Below are positions 48,443-64,000 of a DNA stretch of 64,000 nucleotides, one piece after another (positions within the stretch are counted from its first letter, which is position 1; each line of letters opens with the position of its first letter). The translations under genes were made by a program, and so were the position numbers. The notes beneath the pieces were generated by a model, which did no database searches, had not been told where the DNA came from, and saw only the letters and a list, made by a program, of their open reading frames with translations. Source of the DNA: Adineta vaga (Eukaryota; Animalia; Rotifera); the NCBI GenBank assembly GCA_021613535.1, contig CP075496.1, forward strand, positions 7,626,001-7,690,000. Direction: 5' to 3'.

Positions 48443-49298
48443 GAACCTTGCGAGAATAAGTGATCGATTCTATTAAACAGGAAACATATTAAGAAGGCTT
48501 TTCGTTTGATAAAAATGTATATTTTTGTGAATAAAACGTGGTAAAAATCAATCTAAAAGATTTCTTTTTTCTTTAAGGCATTTTATTACTCAAAACGTTT
48601 ATTTTAGCCTATAAAACTTCAAACCGAAATAATACTATTTCTTTACTAGATGGATGTCGTCAATATTTTTTTCTACACTATTTATATAACTGATTTATGT
48701 ACAATATTCGATGCACAAGTAAAACTAATTTTTTGTTACGCAATTTGCAGCTTGACAAAAATAAAAAATTCCAGATTGTCCTAAATAAATACTTCCAAAA
48801 TCTAGTCAATTCGCAAAAAATAACATTCAAAACAGCCACTTTCATATTACTGATGGTTGAAAGCATTATTATTATTCTCCTCCAATCAGAAGAATTATGC
48901 AAGTTTAATAGCACAGATAGCGAGCGAACATACCATTAAGTCATAATACATAAGTGTTTGTCTAACGCCCGTTACCTGTCCTTCTCATACTAGATGTTTT
49001 TGCATAATTTTCTTTTTCAAAATATCATATTTATAAAATATGTCTTTAGAGAACAGAAAAGTGACATCAATGATTGTGTTTTTTCTTTGCATCTATACCG
49101 CTACTCTTTCTTACTCACGCTGATGCATAAATTATTCTACAGGTAAAACTCCCGTCGACCCAACAACAGTCACCTAGTGGATAGCAGTGTTTACACACAT
49201 AAGTTACACCTTTCAATATTCGATCATGTTTCCTTCTTTATTTGGTAATCAAGTCAAAAAAAACTTTACAATATGTCATAGCTAATCATTATTATCCT

Positions 49299-52200
49299 CT
49301 ACATTATCGAGCATGCTCGACTTTGTGCAATCACCGGAGCACTACCAATACGTGCCAGCTTCCTCTTCTCTCCTACTTTCATCTTTTCCTCTCTCCGTAA
49401 ACTTGTCTTTGGTCGTTGCATATCGAGTAAATGCCGTCGTGGTTGAGTCGGCTCAACTTCAGGCACAGCTTGTTTCAATCGTGCGAGAATCATTTCAAAT
49501 TCTTTTCCACTCCATCTTTCTTTTCCATCACTTGGATGTCGAAAATCGATATAAGATCGTTCAGCAAATACCATTGACATCGGACCAGCTGGTGGCCATG
49601 TTTGTGTATCTTCAATCAACAGGGGAACGATCAACTTCTCCAAAGCATCAGACAAAGCCATTTCTCGTCGACAATTGATCGATTTTGTGTATTTCGGTGT
49701 TACGCATGACAAAATACATTTTGCATGACGAATACCTGTGTCAATCTTTTCAAACAGTGAATCACCGCCACCCATCTGAAAAATATCTAACCAACAACGA
49801 TAACCAAGCTTCGTTAACTTCTTGTACAAGATGACAATCTCTTTTTGACAATCCCACTGATACGAGATCATGACTTGTGGATGAGTGACGACCAGTAGCG
49901 TATCATCATCATCGTCGTTCTTGTCTTTCTTCTCATCTTTTGTCGTCGTCGTCTTCGTCGTCGTCGCTGGTTCAGTTTTAGTACTCTGCGTGGTGGTGAT
50001 CGTCGTCGATGGTGGTGCAGTCGAAGGTGTTGGCTGAAGAAAGATCAGATTATCAACACGAGGTACAAACCAATTGCGATACTGGTCACCAATCATGTCT
50101 GGATCAGGTGCAACGTGATAACGAATTTGACCCAGCAATTCAGTGAACTTATCAGCTGGCCAATAGTCTTCATCGTTCGCTTTTCGATCAAAGAATCGGA
50201 TGTACAAGTATTCACTCATGATCGGTCCCAGAGCACCTTCGGGTGGCCACGTTTGCTTTTCCATTTGTAGAGGAATCAATGGTTTGCCTGTACTGATCGT
50301 GAGATGGACTTCACGTGAACAATTGTCGGATTGTGCATACTTTTTGTTCAAACAACAGACAACAACTTTTGCACCACGAATACCAGCATCGATCTTTGCA
50401 AACAGTTTATCACCACCACCCATTTCACCTGTGTCCATCCAACAAGCGTAACCAGCTTGTTCGAGATGTGATTTTAGTCGAGTAACAGCTTTTTGCGAAC
50501 CCCACTGATACGAGAGAAACACAGGCGGCAGTCGCTTGATATCAATGTCGAGATCATCAGGAATGAGTTGACCAGCAGTTGCCATTGCTTTTCGAATGAT
50601 ATCTTCGACGTCTTGTCGACCGATTTCGTTGAGCATTTTTACTAATCCATATGTTGCTTCATCTGCTTTGTGTGTCATATACCATTCATTGAGTAATGAC
50701 ATCGACGGATCTAATTGCATAGTCCAATGTTTGAGTTCACTTGTGGAATATCCAAAACGTTTGCCAAGTAGTCGCCAATCATTTGAAGCACGAACATTGA
50801 GAAGTCGACATGCTTCGTGACCCCATTCTGATGGTACATAACTCAATGTCTTTGCGTCGATACGTTCAATATCGCGAGCTTGAGACTGAACTTGTTCGTT
50901 GAGTTGAATGATGTTTGTATCGACGACATCGACTCGTGCATCCAAATTAGTCATCTATGTATACGAATAAGAGAAAAAAAAGCATAATTATTGATGATGA
51001 AGGAAATGTTGACGTATTAGTTGTATGTCATCTCGAACTGTTTGTATCTGAGACACTATAGCATCTAGTCGATTCTCGATTCGATCCAAATAATTAATGA
51101 GAACATCATTAGTGGTAGTTGTAGAATCAGGTTGATGGAGATTAAGTGATGAGGAGGCGTGAGCTAGAGAATGGTGAGCAGTCATGGTCTAGAAATGTGC
51201 AACAAACATCAATGAGTTCTACACTCGAAACTGGCTCAAAGTAACAATTGAAACTGAGAGGAAGAGGTACTTACATGTAGTTCTTGTCGTTTCACTAGTT
51301 TCGTTATATTGTTAACATTCTTCTCAGTATGAACAACACGTTCTTCGATTTGAGACATTTCATCCAATGTTCGATTCAGTGTCGCTTGATGTTCTTCGCT
51401 CATCTTATTTCCATCAATCATATCGAGCAACATTCGACATGCTGAGTTCGATTCAAACTCCAACAAATCATCACGTTTATTGGCAAGAATCGTTTTATGT
51501 CGAATGCCAATCAGTTGACATGTGTGAAATATGTATGAACATAGATCAGCAGAGATGTTCTTTGTATTTTTGATTAAATCGATCAACAATGTGAGATACT
51601 CATCAGCTGCTTGTTCACCATTGATGATGGTTGATGCCACGAGATATTGTTGCAGACAAGTGAATGCTTCGAATGTTTGTTGTTGCTGGGAAACGAGAAG
51701 AATGAGTTGTTGTCGATGTTTGTCGAAGAGATGTGGTTGTGTGCTGGCAACATGGCTGAGTAATCGGCAGATAGTTTGAGTTGTATTCGGTTGATGATAA
51801 ATGTCGATGGAGGTGAATAAATAGTCGATTTGTGATTCGGTGATGATGTGTGGATGTGATTTGAGAATAATATCGAGAAGTGATGCGATGGTCGGAAGAT
51901 GCTGTGCATTGTTGTCGAAAAGAAGATGAATAAGATCGTTGAGTCGATGATGAAATGGTTGTGGATGTTTCGCGTATATTGTCTAAATAGATATGAAAGA
52001 AATGATTTTACCAAATAGGAAGTTATGAAACTATCAAACTTCACTATGTTAGTCTATATGCTAGTTGTACGTGTTGAAAGAAGAATATGAATACAGAGTC
52101 AAATATAGATGTTGTAAGGAAAGAATCTAACGTTATATCTTTCTCAGAGAATTGTTAGATTAGGTATGTAACAACCTGATATAATGGGAGATTTGATTGA

Positions 52201-55145
52201 ACTATCTATATTTGAAGCTAGAATAGTTCGTTGTGAAACAACTTCGTTAGGTGTCATATAAGACCGATAATCTGAACGCTGGCTTAACCAATTCATATTG
52301 AATTTTGGAAAATCTATTGAGACACATCGTGGAAAAGGTATTCCTGATGATATTTTATGCGTCTATGCTTAAAGGTCTTCAGCAAACTACTACTACGTCA
52401 AGTAACAAACAAACTATTATACATCATTTTTCAAGTTTTTTAAAGCTACAATCAATCCAATACTAAACATCATAAATTCATTTAATGCCATCTACGCATC
52501 AAATATTGAAAAAGATGATACTTACATAGAGTATTGCTATCATCATCATCTGCTTGTGATCGATTATTTCTTTAAGAAACTGTTCACTGTGTTCAGCCGC
52601 CATAGTTGGAAATTTCAGTCCCACAATAATCCAGAACGTAGTCCACCATGAATGTATGCTATCCTCATTTTCATCATATATCAACTCAAATAAACGATCC
52701 ACACATCTCTCATATGCACGAGCATCATTCTCATTATCAATACATGGTCCCATTGCAAACCATATAACCAAAGCTGTATAATGTTCCGTCGTTGGCAAAC
52801 CACTTTCATTGTGCAACGGACAGTTCAATGCTGACAAACAGTATCTCGCTAACTCTTCGTGCATAATAGTCGGAAAAGGTTTCAGTGGTTGCAAACATCG
52901 TCTCAGTAGTTTGCCAAGAACCTGTGAACAAACAGCAATACATGGCAAACGTTTTAGTTGTAGACAGTACAGTATACATACCCTCAAAAACTGCTCATAA
53001 TGTGATTCAACAACATATTTGTCATCATCGACACTGTCCACATGTTTCTGAAGAATGCTAATGAGTTGACGACATATATCGACCGTCATTTGTTTTTCGT
53101 CGACGAGTTCTGTCATTGGTTCACCCATTGTATACACATGTTTTGGATACGCTTGTCCATTATCGATATTGATAGGTGATGACCACTTGAGAACTGCTTC
53201 TAAAGCTGGTTGATGCGTTGCTCGGAGCATCGATGGGTTTGTTGTTGCTCGATCATGAATTAATTTGAGCATACCATCTAGATTGTCTAATTCAGAATTT
53301 GTTGAACTGACTATAATCTGATCGTATGCGCTGCATGATTGGATGAGATGAGTAAGTTGTTGATCCAGTTGCTTCCATGGATAAAACTCACTTATACTTA
53401 ACAGACGTTTCGCACAACTAGGAGCTTCGATAACAGTCAGATCAACAATTGCCACTATGAGATCAAAGCAACTATTTCCAAGTTTCTTGTTTAGCTTCTT
53501 TTTCGTGAGTTCATATGACAGTGGTGAGACAAGATGTTTACAAAAAGAAGATCGACATTCGAGATCGACTACTGATGAGCACATACGAATGAAAGTTTGG
53601 ATGAGTTCTTCGAGATTTGTGATTAAGTCGAAGTGGGGAGCAATGACATGAGAGAAGAAACATTCTGCTTCTTTGAAGAGGTTGTGCGAAACAAGTTTTT
53701 CGATGGCTACATAGATTTGAGATGGATCGTTTTTGAATAAATCTGGATGTTGTTGAAGTGATTTTGCAAGAAGACTAACATATTTTGGAGAGACAGGTGG
53801 TGCGATTGCAGCTGATATGTGCTGCTGTGCATCGGTCGGCGATGTAAACATGTCGAATAGTGTCGGAAACGTTCGTTCAATAATGCATGAAATTTCCAAC
53901 CAAATTGTCGATTGATGAAAATTTTGAGCAGCGTTTCTTCGAAATGAATAGACATGTATTCATCAATAGGAGTATAGGTGAGGGTAACAAGTATTTCAAA
54001 AAGATATCTTTGATCTAGGTATGTCGATTGCTATGAATTAGGTTATTACAAGCTGTAAGAACTATCGTTTTCCAACGAATTTCTATAAAGTTAATCACAA
54101 AAACTCAATGAAATATACCTCACAAAGGAAAATATGTTTAAAATATGTAACATAGGATAATTAGAACAAAACAAAAGATATAAAAACATCCATTCATAGA
54201 AATTTTTCACAATTGTGAAAATATAAGTTGTAAAATGATGGAATACTTGCTTGTATGAACTTCACATAGTCAAATTAGATAAAAAAAAATAAACTTTGTA
54301 TACATGACCTGTTCACTTGCAGTAATGAATTTAAGAAGCTGATATCATAGCCCCATTAAATTTTAACTATTGTGAGCTATCTACGATTTCATTCAATATT
54401 TGGAACTCTGCATATTAATTCTCACGTTGCTAACAGTATTATCAACATAAAAATTCTTTATAACATCACGTATTTCTACTTAAAGTACACTTCAATTAAC
54501 TATTTAACAATATCAACACTCTTACAGTGATAAACGATCAACAAAATGTTTGGCTGTATGATAAAATTACCTGTAGAATTGTTGATAACTACTTCTCATT
54601 ATCATCATTGTTTCTAATTTGTTTAATTTATTCACATCAGAACTTATCGGTGAAAACATGCCTCTTGTTAGAAAATATTTCCATTGTTCTTCCACTTTAA
54701 CATCACAATTCTTCTTTGAAAATTCATGTTTTTGCAAACAAAGAAGAATCTTTTCCATTAAATCAACACATCCATCGTTGCACAAACGTTCGCCCAATCG
54801 ATATGTATAATATACTTTTTCAATCAGTCGCAAATTGAGCATCTTATTTGTGTCTGGTACATCTAATAAATGACAAAATATTCGAACTAATTCATCGTTC
54901 GACGGTAACGGACCATTAGACAGTGTCTTCAAAGTTACATCAATAAAAGTCAGCTTGATGTTTGCACACTGTTCATTATCGGCTGCGACATAATCAGTGA
55001 GAGCATCTAAAGATTTGATTTTAAATGATGGTTGATCAGTTTCTGAAATATTGATTGATAATTTATGGAATTGATCGAATATAGCAGGCCATTGACTTTC
55101 GAGTTGGTCATTATCATGAGGAAGCTGTCGAATAAGAACATCCAT
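49299..55145 (-). CDS. Helical-repeat / coiled coil / Death / TIR / TIR / CaaX protein, copy A (exons ~55145-54570, ~53936-52526, 51982-51275, 50954-49299)
   Basis: Death-fold segment DWRLLGKRFGYSTSELKHW..SLLNEW..LVKMLNEIGRQDV; TIR_2-type domains VFLSYQW..WMDTGEMGGGD..SDNCSREV and VMISYQW..WLDIFQMGGGD..SINCRREM; C-terminus CSIM*. In-phase GT-AG junctions link the upstream ORFs; the exon 1-2 junction is the least certain. Confidence 0.85.
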
Positions 55146-56752
55146 ATTTTCTATACCCTAGGATTGGAAAGAAAATTAAAAAACTTCTAGTTAATGTCAA
55201 TAAAAACGTCGACAAAGAGAAAGCAGGTATCAGCGTAACTTCGTAGGGAAGAAAGAAAAATATTATTACCACTATAGTCTAGGTGACGACGAAGAAAAAG
55301 AACTCTTTTTTTCTTCGTCAAGAAAAAATAAGTTTTTATCTATCAACATGTTTTTCTTTGTTCTCAGAGTATATCTTGTGACAACATACATATACAAATA
55401 CTTTTTTAAAAGATCGAGTAAAGAACTGATATCGTGAAATATATATAAATATGTATATAAGAACTTGAGAGATTAAGCACAATATAAATATGTAAGTTTT
55501 ATACCGAACTTATTTTAATATCTCATTCATAATTATGATTTTAATGCAAACTAAAAATATAGTTGTTTAGTTGATATCATATAGAAATAAATCATTTACT
55601 TCAAAATTAAATTTAATAAATGCATCAACATCGGAACTAGAATTAGTTTTTCGAAAGAGAAGTAGTCCATTGACATAATTATATTGCGATATAGCCATTA
55701 TTATGAGACTGGTGTGCAAGATAAATAAACCATGAATTAGAAGAAGTTATAATTTCTTGCTAATTTTTTTCAATTGAATGATGAAATTGTAATTATTTGG
55801 TACAAAAAGATGGACAAGGGATAACTGATTTTCAACAGAAAATTACAATACAGAAACGACTTGATATAAACAATCTGACAATTTTTGTAATAAACATAAA
55901 TTTTGCTAAAATATTCACATAAAAATCGATAACAATATTACGATAAACATTGTTCCGATGATAGACGAAACTATCACCATTTTTCAAGAAAATAATTATA
56001 AATGCATTCATACTACTATACGATAACAAGGAAAACATATATCCATCATTCCTGCTGAAGAATACAGGTTTAAATCTACATATATTCCAGTTTTATGGTA
56101 AAATTAGCTTTTAACGAAAACAACATCCATATTGTACTTTCATTTATAGTTGACTATTAGAAAGTCGCATATGTATGCCATAAAAACACTCTACATTGAA
56201 ATCAATCGTATTTTTGTTTTCGACTGAATATTTAAGTTACTCTATTTATCACCACAGATTACCGACAGTTTTCTTTTCATATTAGAAACATTGACAGCTA
56301 ATGATATTGGTTTTAAATTAAGATATTTCCACAGACAAAGCACAATTTGAAAACATCCAATAATCTTCTCAATACATGATCTCAGAAATATTTATTCATA
56401 ATTCAGTTTGACAGTACTTAAGAAACTCAAAGTAGAGTATTTCTTTATCATTAATTATATTTATTTATTAAGTGCATTTAATTCATGGTAACTTCCCTTT
56501 GTGACTGTTTCAAAAAGCTTGTTATCCTTACTTAACTAACTTCATCGAATGAACAGGCTCACTAATTTTTTTATTGAAGTTCAAGCACATGCATGCTGCA
56601 GAGACTACTCTCCTCGTGTACTAACGATTAAATCGACAGTAATGTTCTTCCATACGTAGTGTATCGATTCAACTGCAAATATGTATCATCATTTATTTTT
56701 TATGAAATTAGAAAAAATTTTACAGTATGTCATAGCTAATCATTATTATCCT

Positions 56753-59700
56753 CTACATTATCGAGCATGCTCGACTTTGTGCAATCACCGGAGCACTACC
56801 AATACGTGCCAGCTTCCTCTTCTCTCCTACTTTCATCTTTTCCTCTCTCCGTAAACTTGTCTTTGGTCGTTGCATATCGAGTAAATGTCGTCGTGGTTGA
56901 GTCGGCTCAACTTCAGGCACAGCTTGTTTCAATCGTGCGAGAATCATTTCAAATTCTTTACCACTCCACCTTTCTTTTCCATCACTTGGATGTCGAAAAT
57001 CGATATAAGATCGTTCAGCAAACACCATTGACATCGGACCAGCTGGTGGCCATGTTTGTGTATCTTCAATCAACAGTGGAACGATCAACTTCTCCAAAGC
57101 ATCAGACAAAGCCATTTCTCGACGACAATTGATCGATTTTGTGTACTTCGGCGTTACGCATGACAAAATACATTTTGCATGACGAATACCTGTGTCAATC
57201 TTTTCAAACAGTGAATCACCGCCACCCATCTGAAAAATATCTAACCAACAACGATAACCAAGCTTTGTTAACTTCTTGTACAAGATGACAATCTCTTTTT
57301 GACAATCCCACTGATACGAGATCATGACTTGTGGATGAGTGACGACCAGTGGCGTATCATCATCATCATCGTTCTTGTCTTTCTTCTCATCTTTTGTCGT
57401 CGTCGTCTTCGTCGTCGTCGCTGGTTCAGTTTTAGTACTCTGCGTGGTGGTGATCGTCGTCGATGGTGGTGCAGTCGAAGGTGTTGGCTGAAGAAAGATC
57501 AGATTATCAACACGAGGTACAAACCAATTGCGATACTGGTCACCAATCATGTCTGGATCAGGTGCAACGTGATAACGAATTTGACCCAGCAATTCAGTGA
57601 ACTTATCAGCTGGCCAATAGTCTTCATCGTTCGCTTTTCGATCAAAGAATCGGATGTACAAGTATTCACTCATGATCGGTCCCAGAGCACCTTCGGGTGG
57701 CCACGTTTGCTTTTCCATTTGTAGAGGAATCAATGGTTTGCCTGTACTGATCGTGAGATGGACTTCACGTGAACAATTGTCGGATTGTGCATACTTTTTG
57801 TTCAAACAACAGACAACAACTTTGGCACCACGAATGCCAGCATCGATCTTTGCAAACAGTTTATCACCACCACCCATTTCGCCTGTGTCCATCCAACACG
57901 CATAACCAGCTTGTTCGAGATGTGATTTTAGTCGAGTAACAGCTTTTTGTGAACCCCACTGATACGAGAGAAACACAGGCGGCAGCCGTTTGATATCGAT
58001 GTCGAGATCATCAGGAATGAGTTGACCAGCAGTTGTCATTGCTTTTCGAATGATATCTTCGACGTCTTGTCGACCGATTTCGTTGAGCATTTTGACTAAT
58101 CCATACGTTGCTTCATCTGCTTTGTGTGTCATATACCATTCATTGAGTAATGACATGGACGGATCTAATTGCATAGCCCAATGTTTGAGTTCACTTGTGG
58201 AATAGCCAAAACGTCTGCCAAGTAGTCGCCAATCATTTGTAGCACGAACATTGAGAAGTCGACATGCTTCGTGACCCCATTCTGATGGCACATAACTCAA
58301 GGTCTTTGCGTCGATACGTTCAATATCGCGAGCTTGAGACTGAACTTGTTCGTTGAGTTGAATGATGTTTGTATCGACGGCATCGATGCGTGCATCCAAA
58401 TTAGTCATCTATGTATACGAATAAGAGAAAAAAAGCATAATTATTGATGATGAAGGAAACGTTAACACATATTCTGCGCTCGAAACTGAAAGGAAGAGAT
58501 ACTTACATGTAGTTCTTGTCGTTTCACTAGTTTCGTTATATTGTTAACATTCTTCTCAGTATGAACAACACGTTCTTCGATTTGGGACATTTCATCCAAT
58601 GTTCGATTCAGTGTCGCTTGATGTTCTTCGCTCATTTTATTTCCATCAATCATATCGAGCAACATTCGACATGCTGAGTTCGATTCAAACTCCAACAGAT
58701 CATCACGTTTCTTGGCAAGAACCGTTTTATGTCGAATGCCAATCAGTTGACATGTGTGAAATATGTATGAACATAGATCAGCAGAGATGTTCTTTGTATT
58801 TCTGATTAAATCGATCAACAGTGTGAGATACTCATCAGCTGCTTGTTCACCATTGATGATGGTTGATGCCACGAGATATTGTTGCAGACAAGTGAATGCT
58901 TCGAATGTTTGTTGTTGTTGTTGCTGGGAAACGAGAAGAATGAGTTGTTGTCGATGTTTGTCGAAGAGATGTGGTTGTGTGCTGGCAACATGGCTGAGTA
59001 ATCGGCAGATAGTTTGAGTTGTATTCGGTTGATGATAAATGTCGATGGAGGTGAATAAATAGTCGATTTGTGATTCGGTGATGATGTGTGGATGTGATTT
59101 GAGAATAATATCGAGAAGTGATGCGATGGTCGGAAGATGCTGTGCATTGTTGTCGAAAAGAAGATGAATAAGATCGTTGAGTCGATGATGAAATGGTTGT
59201 GGATGTTTCGCGTATATTGTCTGAATAGATATGAAACTTAGTAAGAATGTAGTGGCATCATTAATCAGAAAACCATAGATCGAACATATATGTGATAGAG
59301 GAAAAAGAGTTTTTATTATTTGCTGCACATGTTCGACTTGTAAATTATATGCATGTAACATGCAGTATCTATACTATTCCAGTGCTTTAGTATCCGTACT
59401 AGGACTGTTTATTCTAGCATTGTTGCTATGTTCATCACGATTAGAATTGTATTTGGGTAGTAGTAACATTTCATGTACGGATAAAAGTAAAACGTTAAAC
59501 TTACGGATAGTACGCCGATCAATATCATAAGTTTGTGATCGATGATTGCTGTAAGAAACTGTTCACTATGTTCAGCCGCCATAGTTGGAAATTTCAGTCC
59601 CACAATAATCCAGAACGTAGTCCACCATGAATGTATGCTATCCTCATTTTCTTCATATATCAACTCAAATAAACGATCCACACATCTCTCATATGCACGA

Positions 59701-61724
59701 GCATCATTCTCATTATCAATACATGGTCCGATTGCAAACCATATAACCAAAGCTGTATAATGTTCCGTCGTTGGCAAACCACTTTCATTGTGCAACGGAC
59801 AGTTCAATGCTGACAAACAGTATCTCGCTAACTCTTCGTGCATAATAGTCGGAAAAGGTTTCAGTGGTTGCAAACATCGTCTCAGTAGTTTGCCAAGAAC
59901 CTGTGAACAAACAGCAATACATGGCAAACGTTTTAGTTGTAGACAGTACAGTATACATACCCTCAAAAACTGCTCATAATGTGATTCAACAACATATGTA
60001 TCATCATCGACACTGTCCACATGTTTCTGAAGAATGCTAATGAGTTGACGACATATATCGACCGTCATTTGTTTTTCGTCGACGAGTTCTGTCATTGGTT
60101 CACCCATTGTATACACATGTTTTGGATACGCTTGTGCATTGCCGATATTGATAGGCGATGACCACTTTAGAACTGCTTCTAAAGCTGGTCGATGCGTTGC
60201 TCGGAACATCGATGGGTTTGTTGCTGCTCGATCATGAATTAATTTGAGCATATCATCTAGCTTGTCTAATTCAGAATTTGTTGAACTGACTACAATCTGA
60301 TCGTATGCGCTGCATGATTGGATGAGATGAGTAAGTTGTTGATCCAGTTGCTTCCATGGATAAAACTCACTTATACTCAACAGACGTTTCGCACAACTAG
60401 GAGCTTCGATAACAGTGAGATCAACAATTGCCACAATCAGATCAAAGCAACTATTTCCAAGTTTCTTGTTTAGCTTCTTTTTCGTGAGTTCATATGACAG
60501 TGGTGAGACAAGATGTTTACAAAAAGAAGATCGACATTCGAGATCGACTACTGATGAGCACATACGAATGAAAGTTTGGATGAGTTCTTCGAGATTTGTG
60601 ATTAAGTCGAAGTGGGGAGCAATGACATGAGAGAAGAAACATTCTGCTTCTTTGAAGAGGTTGTGCGAAACAAGTTTTTCGATGGCTACATAGATTTGAG
60701 ATGGATCGTTTTTGAATAAATCTGGATGTTGTTGAAGTGATTTTGCAAGAAGACTAACATATTTTGGAGAGACAGGTGGTGCGATTGCAGCCGATATGTG
60801 CTGCTGTGCATCGGTCGGCGATGTAAACATGTCGAATAGTGTTGAAAATGTGCCTTCTATGGTGAGTAAAATTTCCAACCAAATATCTGATTGATTAAAA
60901 TGCTGAGCTGCAAATCTTTAATGTAGAGAAAATTAAATTAAATCAAGAAGCAAATGACTATTTTTTCGACCAAGAACGAAGACAATATTTAGCTAAATTG
61001 TTATTGGAAAGTGATAATCAAACTGTAAACACATAGCTTCATAAGTGGTATAAAAAAATTTCGTTATAAGGAGAACGAATTAATTTTCGAGCTTTTGATA
61101 ATACACATTCTTATGTGTAACACGTTTCTTACGCTAAAGATAAAATTACCTGTAGAATTGTTGATAACTACTTCTCATTATCATCATTGTTTCTAATTTG
61201 TTTAATTTATTCACATCAGAACTTATCGGTGAAAACATGCCTCTTGTTAAAAAATATTTCCATTGTTCTTCCACTTTAACATCACAATTCTTCTTTGAAA
61301 ATTCATGTTTTTGCAAACAAAGAAGAATCTTTTCCATTAAATCAACACATCCATCGTTGCACAAACGTTCGCCCAATCGATATGTATAATATACTTTTTC
61401 AATCAGTCGCAAATTGAGCATCTTATTTGTGTCTGGTACATCTAATAAATGACAAAATATTCGTACTAATTCATCGTTCGACGGTAACGGACCATTAGAC
61501 AGTGTCTTCAAAGTTACATCAATAAAAGTCAGCTTGATGTTTGCACACTGTTCATTATCAGCTGCGACATAATCAGTGAGAGCATCTAAAGATTTGATTT
61601 TAAATGATGGTTGATCAGTTTCTGAAATATTGATTGATAATTTATGGAATTGATCGAATATAGCAGGCCATTGACTTTCGAGTTGGTCATTATCATGAGG
61701 AAGTTGTCGAATAAGAACATCCAT
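56753..61724 (-). CDS. Helical-repeat / coiled coil / Death / TIR / TIR / CaaX protein, copy B (exons 61724-61150, 60915-59505, 59220-58507, 58408-56753; ~1450 aa)
   Basis: Tandem duplicate of copy A. All three introns splice in frame (QQFYR|FAAQHF, IGVLS|TIYAK, QELH|MTNLD). Confidence 0.87.
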
Positions 61725-62031
61725 ATTTTGTATTTTTATAATAATAATACTACTACGAACGTTGTATTTTTATTTTCGTAATGACGTGAAAAAATAGAAA
61801 GTATAAACGTATGTATGTCGACTGTAGAAAGAAAAATAACGTTGCTATGTTCGATATAGTAACGAAGAAGAATGATGTTCTTTTTTTTGTAGGTAAATAG
61901 AATTTCAAGCTTTGGTCTGGTAAATGCTTTCTTTTATTTTCAAATAATATTTTGCGTCAATTTATATATACAAACGTTTTTAAGATACATCTACACACAA
62001 AGGATCGAAAAAAATATATATCTATAGAATT

Positions 62032-64000
62032 TTAATCATAAATCTGTTCAATATTCTCGCGATCATCGAATTGATTCAAATCCAATGTAAGACAATGACT
62101 TGTAATGCAATCACCGGGCTAAAAATAGAAATAAAGACAAGGAAAAGCATTTTGGAATTCAATTGATGAGGTTTCAAAATGAATTAGTTTACTTCAGGAT
62201 AAATGCCAACAAGTGCATCAGCACGTGAATAGAATTGTTCTTTTAATGAGATAACAATACATTGAAATTCAGATGCCGATTGTTCACGAATGAAATCAGC
62301 TACTTTGCCGATGTTTGTATTATCGAGAGCAGCATCGACTTCGTCCAGTAAGAAGAATGGAGCTGGTTTAAAACTGCAATACAAGCATTATACATGAATT
62401 CATATGACACTAAATTCGATTCATAGACTAACAAGACTTGTCTCTATCAAGCTGTTTGTATTATATGAACGAACCTTCGTAAAGCAAATAGTAAACATAT
62501 AGCTGCAACTGTTTTTTCACCACCAGATAAATTTTCCATTGCTTGAAAACGTTTACCAGGTGCAACACAATTATATGTTATTCCACCACGATATGGTTCT
62601 TCAGCATCTTCAGCAGTTAAACAAGCTACAGCAGCTTGTGAATTCGTTAATGATTTATAAATATCATCAATACATGCTGATACATGTTCATAAAGTGCAT
62701 TAAATCGATCACAACGTTCTTTTTTAACTGTTTCAAAAGTTTGTCTTGCTAGTTTAGCTGCATTTCGTGCACGTTCAAATTCGGCATTTGTCAATTCAAA
62801 TGTAGATTTTACTTCACGTGAACGTGCATCAATGACTGAAGTTTGTGGAAGATGTTTTTGAAGTTGAATTTCAATATCAGCCATTTGTTTAATTAGTAAT
62901 TTTTCTTCTTTATCAATTTGATCATAATTTATTTTCTTTAAATCATCACGTAAACGTTTGAAATTTAAGTCAAATTTATCTTCTTTTTCATAGATTTGTT
63001 TTGTTTCAACTTGACTTGTTAATGTTCCATCGCCATTTGATAATGTCGAAGAATCCGTCGTTGTTGTTGATTGAGTCATTAACATTGTTGTGGAAGAATT
63101 ACTTTGAGTTTGAGTACTAACGACACTTGTATCGTCGGATGAAGACGTTTCGGCAAGAGAGATTTTAGCCATAGAACCAGCATTACCACGAAATGGCAAT
63201 GAAATTTCATTTAACTAAAAGAAAAAAAGTGAGTTGTATCTTTGTCATAATTGAGAAGTTTAGTTTTAACGAAAGAGAAGATTTAAGAAATGTTTAACTC
63301 TATACCTTCGCTGTTCGGTAAAAATTATGTCGATCCAAACGTAATTTATCAATATCACTTTCGATAAGTTGTAATCGTTTTCGTTGTTCATTAAAATCTT
63401 TATTTAATTGTGTAGCACGTTTACTATAATCATTTAATTCACGTTCTTGAAATTCAATTTTCTGCTTATGATCCAATAATCGATCCTTAATATCACCAAT
63501 TTCTTGTTGAAGATCTTCAATAATCTAAATAAATATCGAATATAACTTTCCGAATTACTTTGAAAATAAATTCTATCTTCTGTACTTTGCGATATTTTTT
63601 TTCATTTTTTTGACATTTTTGTAAAGCATCTTCTAATGTCGTAACTTCATTTTGAATTTCTTCTACATGACCAGCAGTATCACGAGATCGTTCGAATTCA
63701 AGCATTGTTTGAATTTTTATTATTTGATTTTCAAATTCTAAACGTTCTTGTGCTCGTTTTTCAGCTGCTTGTAATTCACGATCTTCGTAAACACTAAAAA
63801 AACATCGAATATTTGAAACAAAACTTAAAAAACAAACTAATGAGTTAATCTACCGAATATTGGAAACATGAATTTGTTTACAAAATTCAGTGAATACTAC
63901 ATCTTCGATTTTATTTTTTTCGATACGTAATTTTGATATACGTTTTTCTCGTTCGTCGATCGATGCTTGTAGAACATTAATTCTCGGCTAAATATATAAG
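62032..64000 (-). CDS. SMC1: Structural maintenance of chromosomes protein 1 (cohesin), 3' portion; 5' end is beyond the window
   Basis: [31 protein letters not shown] (signature), [20 protein letters not shown] (Walker B/D-loop), [22 protein letters not shown], preceded by coiled coil. Confidence 0.96.

Follow-up and report, generated by a model that had tools for sequence, protein, structure and literature searches.

SARM1 and Caenorhabditis elegans TIR-1 join an N-terminal ARM/HEAT-type solenoid to an oligomerization module and a TIR domain of the TIR_2 type with a glutamate at the catalytic position, and MyD88 places an N-terminal Death domain and an intermediate domain ahead of a single scaffold-type TIR domain in a protein of about 300 amino acids that is presumed to act through higher-order assembly. 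A further group of TIR proteins, ecTIR-DC family 6, was reportedly defined by Gerdol et al. in 2017 (Dev Comp Immunol 70:145). In the description given by a paper that cites this work, its members combine ARM-like repeats, a centrally located Death domain and a pair of TIR domains (PMC6836662). The ecTIR-DC proteins are widespread in invertebrates, with none in vertebrates, and a role as adaptors or regulators has been hypothesized only (PMC6321704). Here, we analyze a 64,000-nucleotide window of the bdelloid rotifer Adineta vaga (assembly GCA_021613535.1, contig CP075496.1, positions 7,626,001 to 7,690,000 of the forward strand), in which two head-to-tail paralogs on the minus strand, copies A and B, lie within positions 49258-61733 and encode large proteins in which a helical-repeat domain is followed by a coiled coil, a Death domain, two TIR domains and a C-terminal CaaX box.

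These proteins resemble each of several described systems in part. With SARM1 and TIR-1 they share the solenoid, the oligomerization module and the TIR_2-type TIR with its glutamate, but they are without a SAM domain, carry two TIR domains instead of one and bear a CaaX box where SARM1 has an N-terminal mitochondrial signal; TIR identity is about 17-24%, and the rotifer proteins are not orthologs. With MyD88 they share the order of Death before TIR and a presumed higher-order assembly, but copy A is 1429 residues long, with its Death domain at residues 927-1001 and two TIR_2 domains, and no Toll-like receptors (TLRs) are reported upstream. Their C-terminus recalls anchors of the type found in K-Ras4B, which ends in CVIM: a disordered basic tail leads into a C-a-a-M box (CSIM here), with a conserved serine just before the cysteine, although the cargo is a death-fold/TIR protein rather than a small GTPase and prenylation is in this case predicted.

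A tandem pair of intact genes

The two copies align in four collinear blocks of 96.7-99.2% identity (49258-55154 against 56712-61733, by blastn and a repeat search), bearing out the tandem pair noticed in an earlier sequence-only reading of the window. Copy A (49299..55145, minus strand; I4U23_019432) has five exons, at 55145-54571, 53936-52982, 52921-52526, 51982-51275 and 50954-49299 with the stop included, which were placed from joints in RNA-like contigs and add up to 4290 nt encoding 1429 amino acids. There is no internal stop over the 1429 codons, splice sites read GT..AG, and the exon-by-exon translation equals the deposited protein UJR31959.1 (P0181) residue for residue over its whole length; P0181 served as the copy A sequence for whole-protein work, and exons were searched singly. 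Copy B (56753..61724, minus strand; I4U23_019433) likewise has five exons (61724-61150, 60915-59961, 59900-59505, 59220-58507 and 58408-56753), assigned by homology to copy A, GT..AG boundaries and open frames, with canonical splice sites at every junction and a frame open over 1431 codons. Both copies are already deposited as A. vaga hypothetical proteins, and the copy B model (UJR31960.1, P0184, 1451 aa) differs from ours only by a retained 60-nt intron 2.

Read-through of that intron (59901-59960, minus strand) adds 20 residues to UJR31960.1, VCILYCLQLKRLPCIAVCSQ, and the homologous 60 nt are spliced out in RNA-like contigs and in the deposited copy A model. The sequence-only reading was right that the products are large spliced proteins but put them at about 1450 aa, where the true lengths are 1429 and 1431 aa. 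It missed the 60-nt intron because this lies in frame inside a large helical open reading frame (ORF). A coiled-coil ORF of copy A, 50988-51185, falls within intron 4 and is removed from the main transcript by splicing. The ORF table suggested that copy A exon 4 is frameshifted, but its reading frame proves to be open and simply has no start codon upstream.

Four public contig sets (X1, X12, X15 and X13), all of them assembled contigs rather than raw reads, were mapped to copy A. With totals of 38-50 Mb of contigs and zero depth over the long introns, X1, X12 and X15 behave as RNA, although this identity is a guess; X13 (147 Mb) has coverage over the introns, as DNA would. Four joints common to X1, X12 and X15, none of them present in X13, skip 634, 60, 543 and 320 nt, and their ends read CT..AC on the plus strand, equivalent to GT..AG on the minus strand. 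All five exons are crossed by one 4413-nt contig (X15, record 20). The helical ORFs and the Death-TIR-TIR exon therefore form one gene and one transcript, as the spliced model of the sequence-only reading required, and are not separate genes. Letters of both A and B type are present in the RNA-like sets, with copy B accounting for 22 of the 40 listed variants, and two loose contig ends are specific to copy B, one in the 5' untranslated region and one at the end of exon 3 (the exon 3/4 joint). Both copies are transcribed.

Depth in X13 over 49250-55200 is ~220-260 on exons, roughly twice that on the copy A-specific introns (~127-140), as would be expected if exon words of A and B collapse into one contig.

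Between the copies there are 38 substitutions and one QQ indel. By a codon-by-codon count, the synonymous divergence (dS) between them is 0.07 and the nonsynonymous divergence (dN) 0.013, and the resulting dN/dS of 0.18 indicates that both are constrained by purifying selection. We considered whether the locus might instead hold decaying duplicates, or be an annotation artefact in which unrelated ORFs are strung together, as the tandem arrangement, the greatly differing intron lengths and an extra ORF in copy A that ends in a stop could suggest. This explanation is refuted by the two long open frames with their canonical splice sites, the low dN/dS, the spliced contigs of both types, one of which crosses all exons, and the existence of orthologs of the same length and order in Rotaria and Adineta steineri.

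TIR domains of the NAD-cleaving type by sequence and fold

Pfam places a Death domain (PF00531) at residues 927-1001 of copy A (50586..50810, minus strand; residues 49-123 of the last exon; E 1.3e-10, 41.7 bits) and at 58040..58264 (minus strand) of copy B (E 2e-11, 44.3 bits), against a curated cut-off of 22.6 bits; the Death and TIR_2 matches all exceed their curated cut-offs. Each copy also carries two PF13676 (TIR_2) domains (E 2.7e-44). On the minus strand of copy A, TIR1 spans 50115..50522, with its glutamate in SDNCSREV, and TIR2 spans 49467..49874, with its glutamate in SINCRREM; in copy B, TIR1 (57976-57569), the linker and TIR2 (57328-56921) occupy 56921..57976, also on the minus strand. 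AlphaFold2, given an alignment of 33 homologs, models residues 879-1429 as, in order, a long helix, a six-helix death fold (model residues 42-126), TIR1, a disordered Thr/Lys/Asp linker, TIR2 and a disordered basic tail, with a predicted local distance difference test score (pLDDT) of about 80-90 for the death fold and an alpha/beta fold for the TIR domains. The C-terminal stretches of the two copies are identical at 544 of 551 residues. A Pfam search of the full protein gave no SAM match at E<=0.01, and the position held in SARM1 by tandem SAM domains, between ARM and TIR, is taken here by the coiled coil and the Death domain.

The sequence-only reading had anticipated most of this arrangement, and its order of helical repeat, coiled coil, Death, TIR, TIR and CaaX is supported by Pfam, AlphaFold2 and the heptad pattern together. 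Its Death segment (~50590-50830 in copy A) coincides with the Pfam domain and the six-helix model, while its two TIR_2 domains, Thr/Lys/Asp linker and basic tail ending in CSIM are recovered by Pfam, AlphaFold2 and ORF translation.

We compared the TIR domains with those of known structure by fold and by profile. In a Foldseek search of the Protein Data Bank (PDB), SARM1 and TIR-1 of C. elegans fill ranks 1-25 (E from 3e-6; template modeling score up to 0.76 on the isolated TIR domain), followed at later ranks by prokaryotic TIR-APAZ (SPARTA) and plant RPS4, and the first MyD88 structure stands at rank 48. When the PDB was searched with a profile built from 45 TIR1 and TIR2 domains, the matches included Cat1, AbTir, PdTIR, SARM1 (E 9e-7), TIR-APAZ and TcpB, with NADase-type TIRs alone at the top and neither TLR nor MyD88 TIRs at E<0.01. 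The family profile was needed for SARM1 and AbTir, as a single-sequence PDB search with the last exon matched Cat1 alone. Both routes thus agree on the SARM1-like TIR domains that the sequence-only reading had proposed, while its broader label of a MyD88/SARM1 hybrid holds as an analogy only: the TIR domains are SARM1-like, but MyD88 TIRs fall outside the profile and there is no SAM domain.

An invariant glutamate of the profile, in S-x-N-C-x-x-E, aligns with the W-x-x-x-E glutamate of AbTir, PdTIR and Cat1, with the TIR1 residue falling on the Cat1 glutamate in the Cat1 alignment. This position, at the start of helix alpha-C, is that of the catalytic residue, E642 in SARM1. The TIR2 glutamate is invariant in both the 33-sequence and the 45-sequence alignments, and both TIR domains of both copies retain theirs. 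By sequence and by fold, the TIR domains are closest to the NAD-cleaving type of SARM1 and bacteria; NAD+-cleaving (NADase) activity itself is predicted only.

These observations bear on whether the proteins could be non-enzymatic scaffolds of the MyD88 kind, in which the TIR domains would bind other TIR proteins, the Death domain would nucleate a death-fold signalosome with kinases, and the CaaX end would provide a membrane platform, with no cleavage of NAD+. Death plus TIR is the MyD88 combination, and the more than 30 other TIR loci that we count in the A. vaga genome are possible partners. The sole published speculation on a family member, a clam gill transcript, is that it acts in TLR signal transduction (PMC6836662), and the adaptor or regulator role hypothesized for ecTIR-DC proteins at large points the same way (PMC6321704). 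However, A. vaga is reported to be without TLRs (PMC8609888), which makes a pure TLR adaptor unlikely in this animal and the protein probably a sensor-effector in its own right. Moreover, the TIR domains match NADase TIRs rather than those of MyD88 and TLRs by profile and by fold rank, and a glutamate that is invariant at the catalytic position of TIR2 across phyla is not needed by a pure scaffold. We regard a purely scaffolding role, the main alternative, as possible but doubtful.

A predicted helical solenoid and a coiled coil of constrained length

The N-terminal 835 residues of copy A (51404..55145, minus strand, introns included) span exons 1-3 and most of exon 4. AlphaFold2, with 15 rotifer homologs in the alignment, models them as an alpha-solenoid of ~47 helices (pLDDT 89.4, predicted template modeling score 0.70), and Foldseek matches to the model are HEAT/ARM solenoids only, namely Kap121p, SF3B1, RRP12, CAND1 and importins/karyopherins (E about 1e-5), in keeping with the ARM/HEAT-like helical N-terminus of the sequence-only reading. 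The repeat class rests on the structure model because Pfam gave only sub-threshold matches on the helical exons (ARM_CPL3, Cnd1 and CUL7/9 ARM). Rotifer and mollusc N-terminal domains align over 645 columns with an hhalign probability of 99.6% (E 6e-25), indicating that the whole architecture is ancient and not a rotifer invention.

A coiled-coil segment follows at residues ~836-913 of copy A, split by intron 4 into 51403-51275 and 50954-50850 on the minus strand. Residues 830-915 follow a heptad pattern whose best register has hydrophobic residues at 68% of the a/d positions, and the long helix of the C-terminal model (model residues 2-35) lies in this segment. The motifs DxIDG and IDxKT flank the coiled coil and keep a distance of 80-81 residues in the proteins of rotifers, gastropods, bivalves and nemerteans (P0181 residues 829-910), a constancy of spacing which argues that the length of the coiled coil is tightly constrained. 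Prediction of a two-copy complex of P0181 residues 836-1005 scored 0.06 against a mark of 0.32, which is evidence neither way.

A CaaX end shared across the family

Both proteins end in CSIM by ORF translation (49302..49313 in copy A and 56756..56767 in copy B, both minus strand). In copy A the box is preceded by a basic disordered tail (49314-49448, minus strand) with pLDDT below 50, and the last 45 residues hold 12 K/R against 4 D/E. Among the 150 best cluster representatives of the family, 89 have a C-x-x-x end, where ~3 would be expected at a cysteine frequency of 1.9%, and the remainder are mostly fragments. The CaaX box, which the sequence-only reading had taken as a genuine signal, is by this count a family-wide feature of the sequences and not a chance ending.

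The relatives' endings are mostly C-[VTSI]-[ILV]-[LM], with a consensus of K-S-K-S-C-a-a-L/M. In the 33-sequence alignment the serine at -3 is invariant, and since this set was picked for ending in cysteine, the serine alone is informative there. Rotifer members mostly end in methionine (C-S-I/L-M, the farnesyl type) and most others, including most mollusc members, in leucine (C-a-a-L, the geranylgeranyl type). CSIM is a predicted farnesyltransferase substrate because, by an established rule, its X position is methionine.

The locus belongs to a catalogued invertebrate family

To place the two genes we searched exhaustively with HMMER, using the last exon as query, and obtained 4387 matches at E<=0.001, of which 963 reach E<=1e-10. 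Among the cluster representatives (50% identity), about 40 with lengths of 1100-1570 aa have a C-terminal Death-TIR-TIR module. Named sources include rotifers (Rotaria and A. steineri, each with the orthologs noted above), gastropod and bivalve molluscs (Haliotis, Patella, Aplysia, Nucella and Mizuhopecten), the nemertean Tubulanus, the annelid Dimorphilus, the hemichordates Saccoglossus and Ptychodera, and the crinoid Antedon. Full-length homologs thus occur in at least six phyla, and all are labeled 'uncharacterized' or 'hypothetical'. The C-terminal module of the A. vaga proteins is 42-46% identical to the proteins of Haliotis, Patella, Aplysia and Mizuhopecten. In the six-contig, 100.8-Mb assembly to which the window belongs, the full architecture is found at four loci: the two tandem genes, a third gene on contig 1 and a fourth on contig 4, 2 Mb away.

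The features given for ecTIR-DC family 6 are all present in these proteins, including the ARM-like helical repeats, the central Death domain, the two C-terminal TIR domains and the homology to molluscs, whose proteins are homologous along the whole length. The family is confined to invertebrates and described as without a signal peptide or transmembrane segment; here the corresponding N-terminus is a helical solenoid, no signal-peptide or transmembrane predictor having been applied. There is no difference in architecture, and the rotifer tail is shorter. The sequence-only reading had not recognized this domain combination from any characterized protein. Its members are indeed uncharacterized, but the architecture, as far as the citing paper describes it, is already that of a named family, an outcome that the reading itself had listed as refuting it, and the claim to novelty therefore fails. 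Three papers that mention ecTIR-DC are all that the searchable literature yielded on this family. In that literature, outside Gerdol et al. 2017 itself, we found no paper tying a TIR protein family to a CaaX anchor and no mention of the conserved CaaX, the NADase-type TIR domains or the fixed 80-aa coiled coil.

More distant relatives share parts of this plan. The NHR-Roc-COR-Death-TIR-CaaX proteins (for example Ornithodoros XP_064476392.1) have a homologous Death-TIR module and a CaaX end, but they carry Neuralized and Roc-COR GTPase domains in place of the solenoid and coiled coil, have one TIR domain and end in C-x-x-C-a-a-L. This last ending is seen in the Neuralized-Roc-COR-Death-TIR relatives P0075, P0106, P0115, P0117, P0122, P0131 and P0140, from ticks and others, and from its sequence it is a possible dual-lipidation signal. 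One such Neuralized-Roc-COR-Death-TIR relative is found in the A. vaga genome, a paralog at G000:C4:5681792-5682411. Separately, the Ptychodera flava protein XP_070543498.1 (P0055) has an EDC3-like N-terminus (LSM14, FDF and YjeF_N) fused to the helical-Death-TIR-TIR arrangement, and its gene model is probably two merged genes.

A proposed model for membrane-anchored TIR signaling

We propose that these proteins are prenyl-anchored, SARM1-like NADases and/or signaling scaffolds that are activated by oligomerization and act independently of TLRs, a reading to which we assign a probability of about 0.5. In this model, the farnesylated C-terminal cysteine and the basic tail would hold the protein at a membrane's cytosolic face, and the solenoid, like the ARM domain of SARM1, would keep it inactive or bind a partner or ligand. 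Upon activation, the coiled coil and the Death domain would drive self-assembly, which would join TIR domains into composite active sites. These sites may then cleave NAD+, for local depletion or as a nucleotide signal, and/or death-fold partners may be recruited. The receptor envisaged in the sequence-only reading, in which an ARM-like sensor would gate oligomerization, is a plausible proposal of the same kind.

Several points weigh against this reading. A sensor or autoinhibitory function for the solenoid would follow solely by analogy with SARM1. The tryptophan of W-x-x-x-E is replaced by asparagine in the family motif, and TIR domains of TLRs carry a glutamate in the equivalent motif yet are not NADases. 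The glutamate at the catalytic position is necessary for NADase activity, but neither sufficient for it nor proof of it. Both genes are assigned to ecTIR-DC family 6, as rotifer members, from the citing paper's description and the mollusc homology, and in the searchable literature we found no functionally characterized member of that family, nor any enzymatic, localization or oligomerization data. Finally, the contig sets that show splicing are only presumed to be RNA.

The same biochemistry might also serve a non-immune role, such as regulated destruction of cells or neurites, stress signaling or recovery from desiccation. The closest solved relatives of the TIR domains are SARM1 and C. elegans TIR-1, whose established roles are in axon degeneration and p38 signaling. 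In addition, the conserved set of four loci is unlike the large lineage-specific expansions typical of pathogen receptors, and the dN/dS between the copies carries no overall sign of diversifying selection. By contrast, pathways of immunity and cell death are enriched in both Death and TIR domains. This alternative differs from the proposed NADase model in physiology and not in mechanism; we consider a non-immune function unlikely.

Evolution of the pair and a candidate cassette exon

Copies A and B are homologous only in their exons, in the 60-nt intron and over flanks of about 10-70 nt. Intron 2 is identical in the two copies, while introns 1 (634 against 234 nt) and 3 (543 against 284 nt), the promoters and both flanks do not align. 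Introns and flanks that do not align at a dS of only 0.07, together with an identical intron 2, favor homogenization by gene conversion limited to exons over a very recent duplication.

Intron 4 of copy A contains a candidate in-frame cassette exon of 150 nt, or 50 codons (51039..51188, minus strand), bounded by AG as acceptor and GTTCGA as donor. The peptide it encodes is homologous to a 52-aa insert in the Rotaria models P0168 and P0169 (BLASTP E 1e-8), and the region has low RNA-contig depth in X1 and X12, where other introns read 0. The RNA-like contigs contain no splice joint for the cassette, and its inclusion is a lead only. The cassette is missing from copy B, deleted along with about 222 bp. 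We also considered whether the ORF at 50988-51185 of copy A could act as a stop-terminated terminal exon, yielding a decoy without TIR domains; this is less likely, as the main transcripts splice it out. An in-frame cassette fits better because it has its own GT donor and the homology to the Rotaria insert, with no joint seen for either form.

Just upstream of copy B, at 62184-63199 on the minus strand, ORFs in which an SMC-type ABC signature (LSGGEKT) is accompanied by a C-terminal Walker B region are probably the 3' exons of a cohesin/SMC gene.

Implications

The architecture looked striking and unknown, yet it is that of an invertebrate family which has been catalogued though not explored functionally, and so it is not categorically new; the parts worth pursuing are its family-wide CaaX end and its NADase-type TIR domains. 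The tandem pair offers a clean case of exon-limited homogenization between duplicates, in which copy B has lost a conserved candidate alternative exon.

More tentatively, the ecTIR-DC family 6 clade, together with those single-TIR and Roc-COR relatives in which the K-S-K-S-C-a-a-X end is also present, could form an unrecognized class of prenyl-anchored animal TIR NADases, executioners or signal generators tethered to membranes, assembled through a coiled coil of fixed length and a Death domain and independent of TLRs, as in TLR-less bdelloids. In this reading, the invariant serine three residues before the prenylated cysteine might serve as a phospho-switch for release from the membrane. We hold this to be a real possibility that falls well short of even odds; if true, SARM1 would be one of several enzymatic TIR lineages in animals and not a lone exception. 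In this family, SARM1-type TIR domains, whose catalytic-position glutamate is kept from rotifers through to echinoderms, are combined with a Death domain and a conserved lipid-anchor signal, and the family persists in an animal reported to be without Toll-like receptors. If NADase activity and prenylation both prove true, these proteins would extend animal enzymatic TIR signaling beyond SARM1 and provide a TLR-independent TIR pathway to study.

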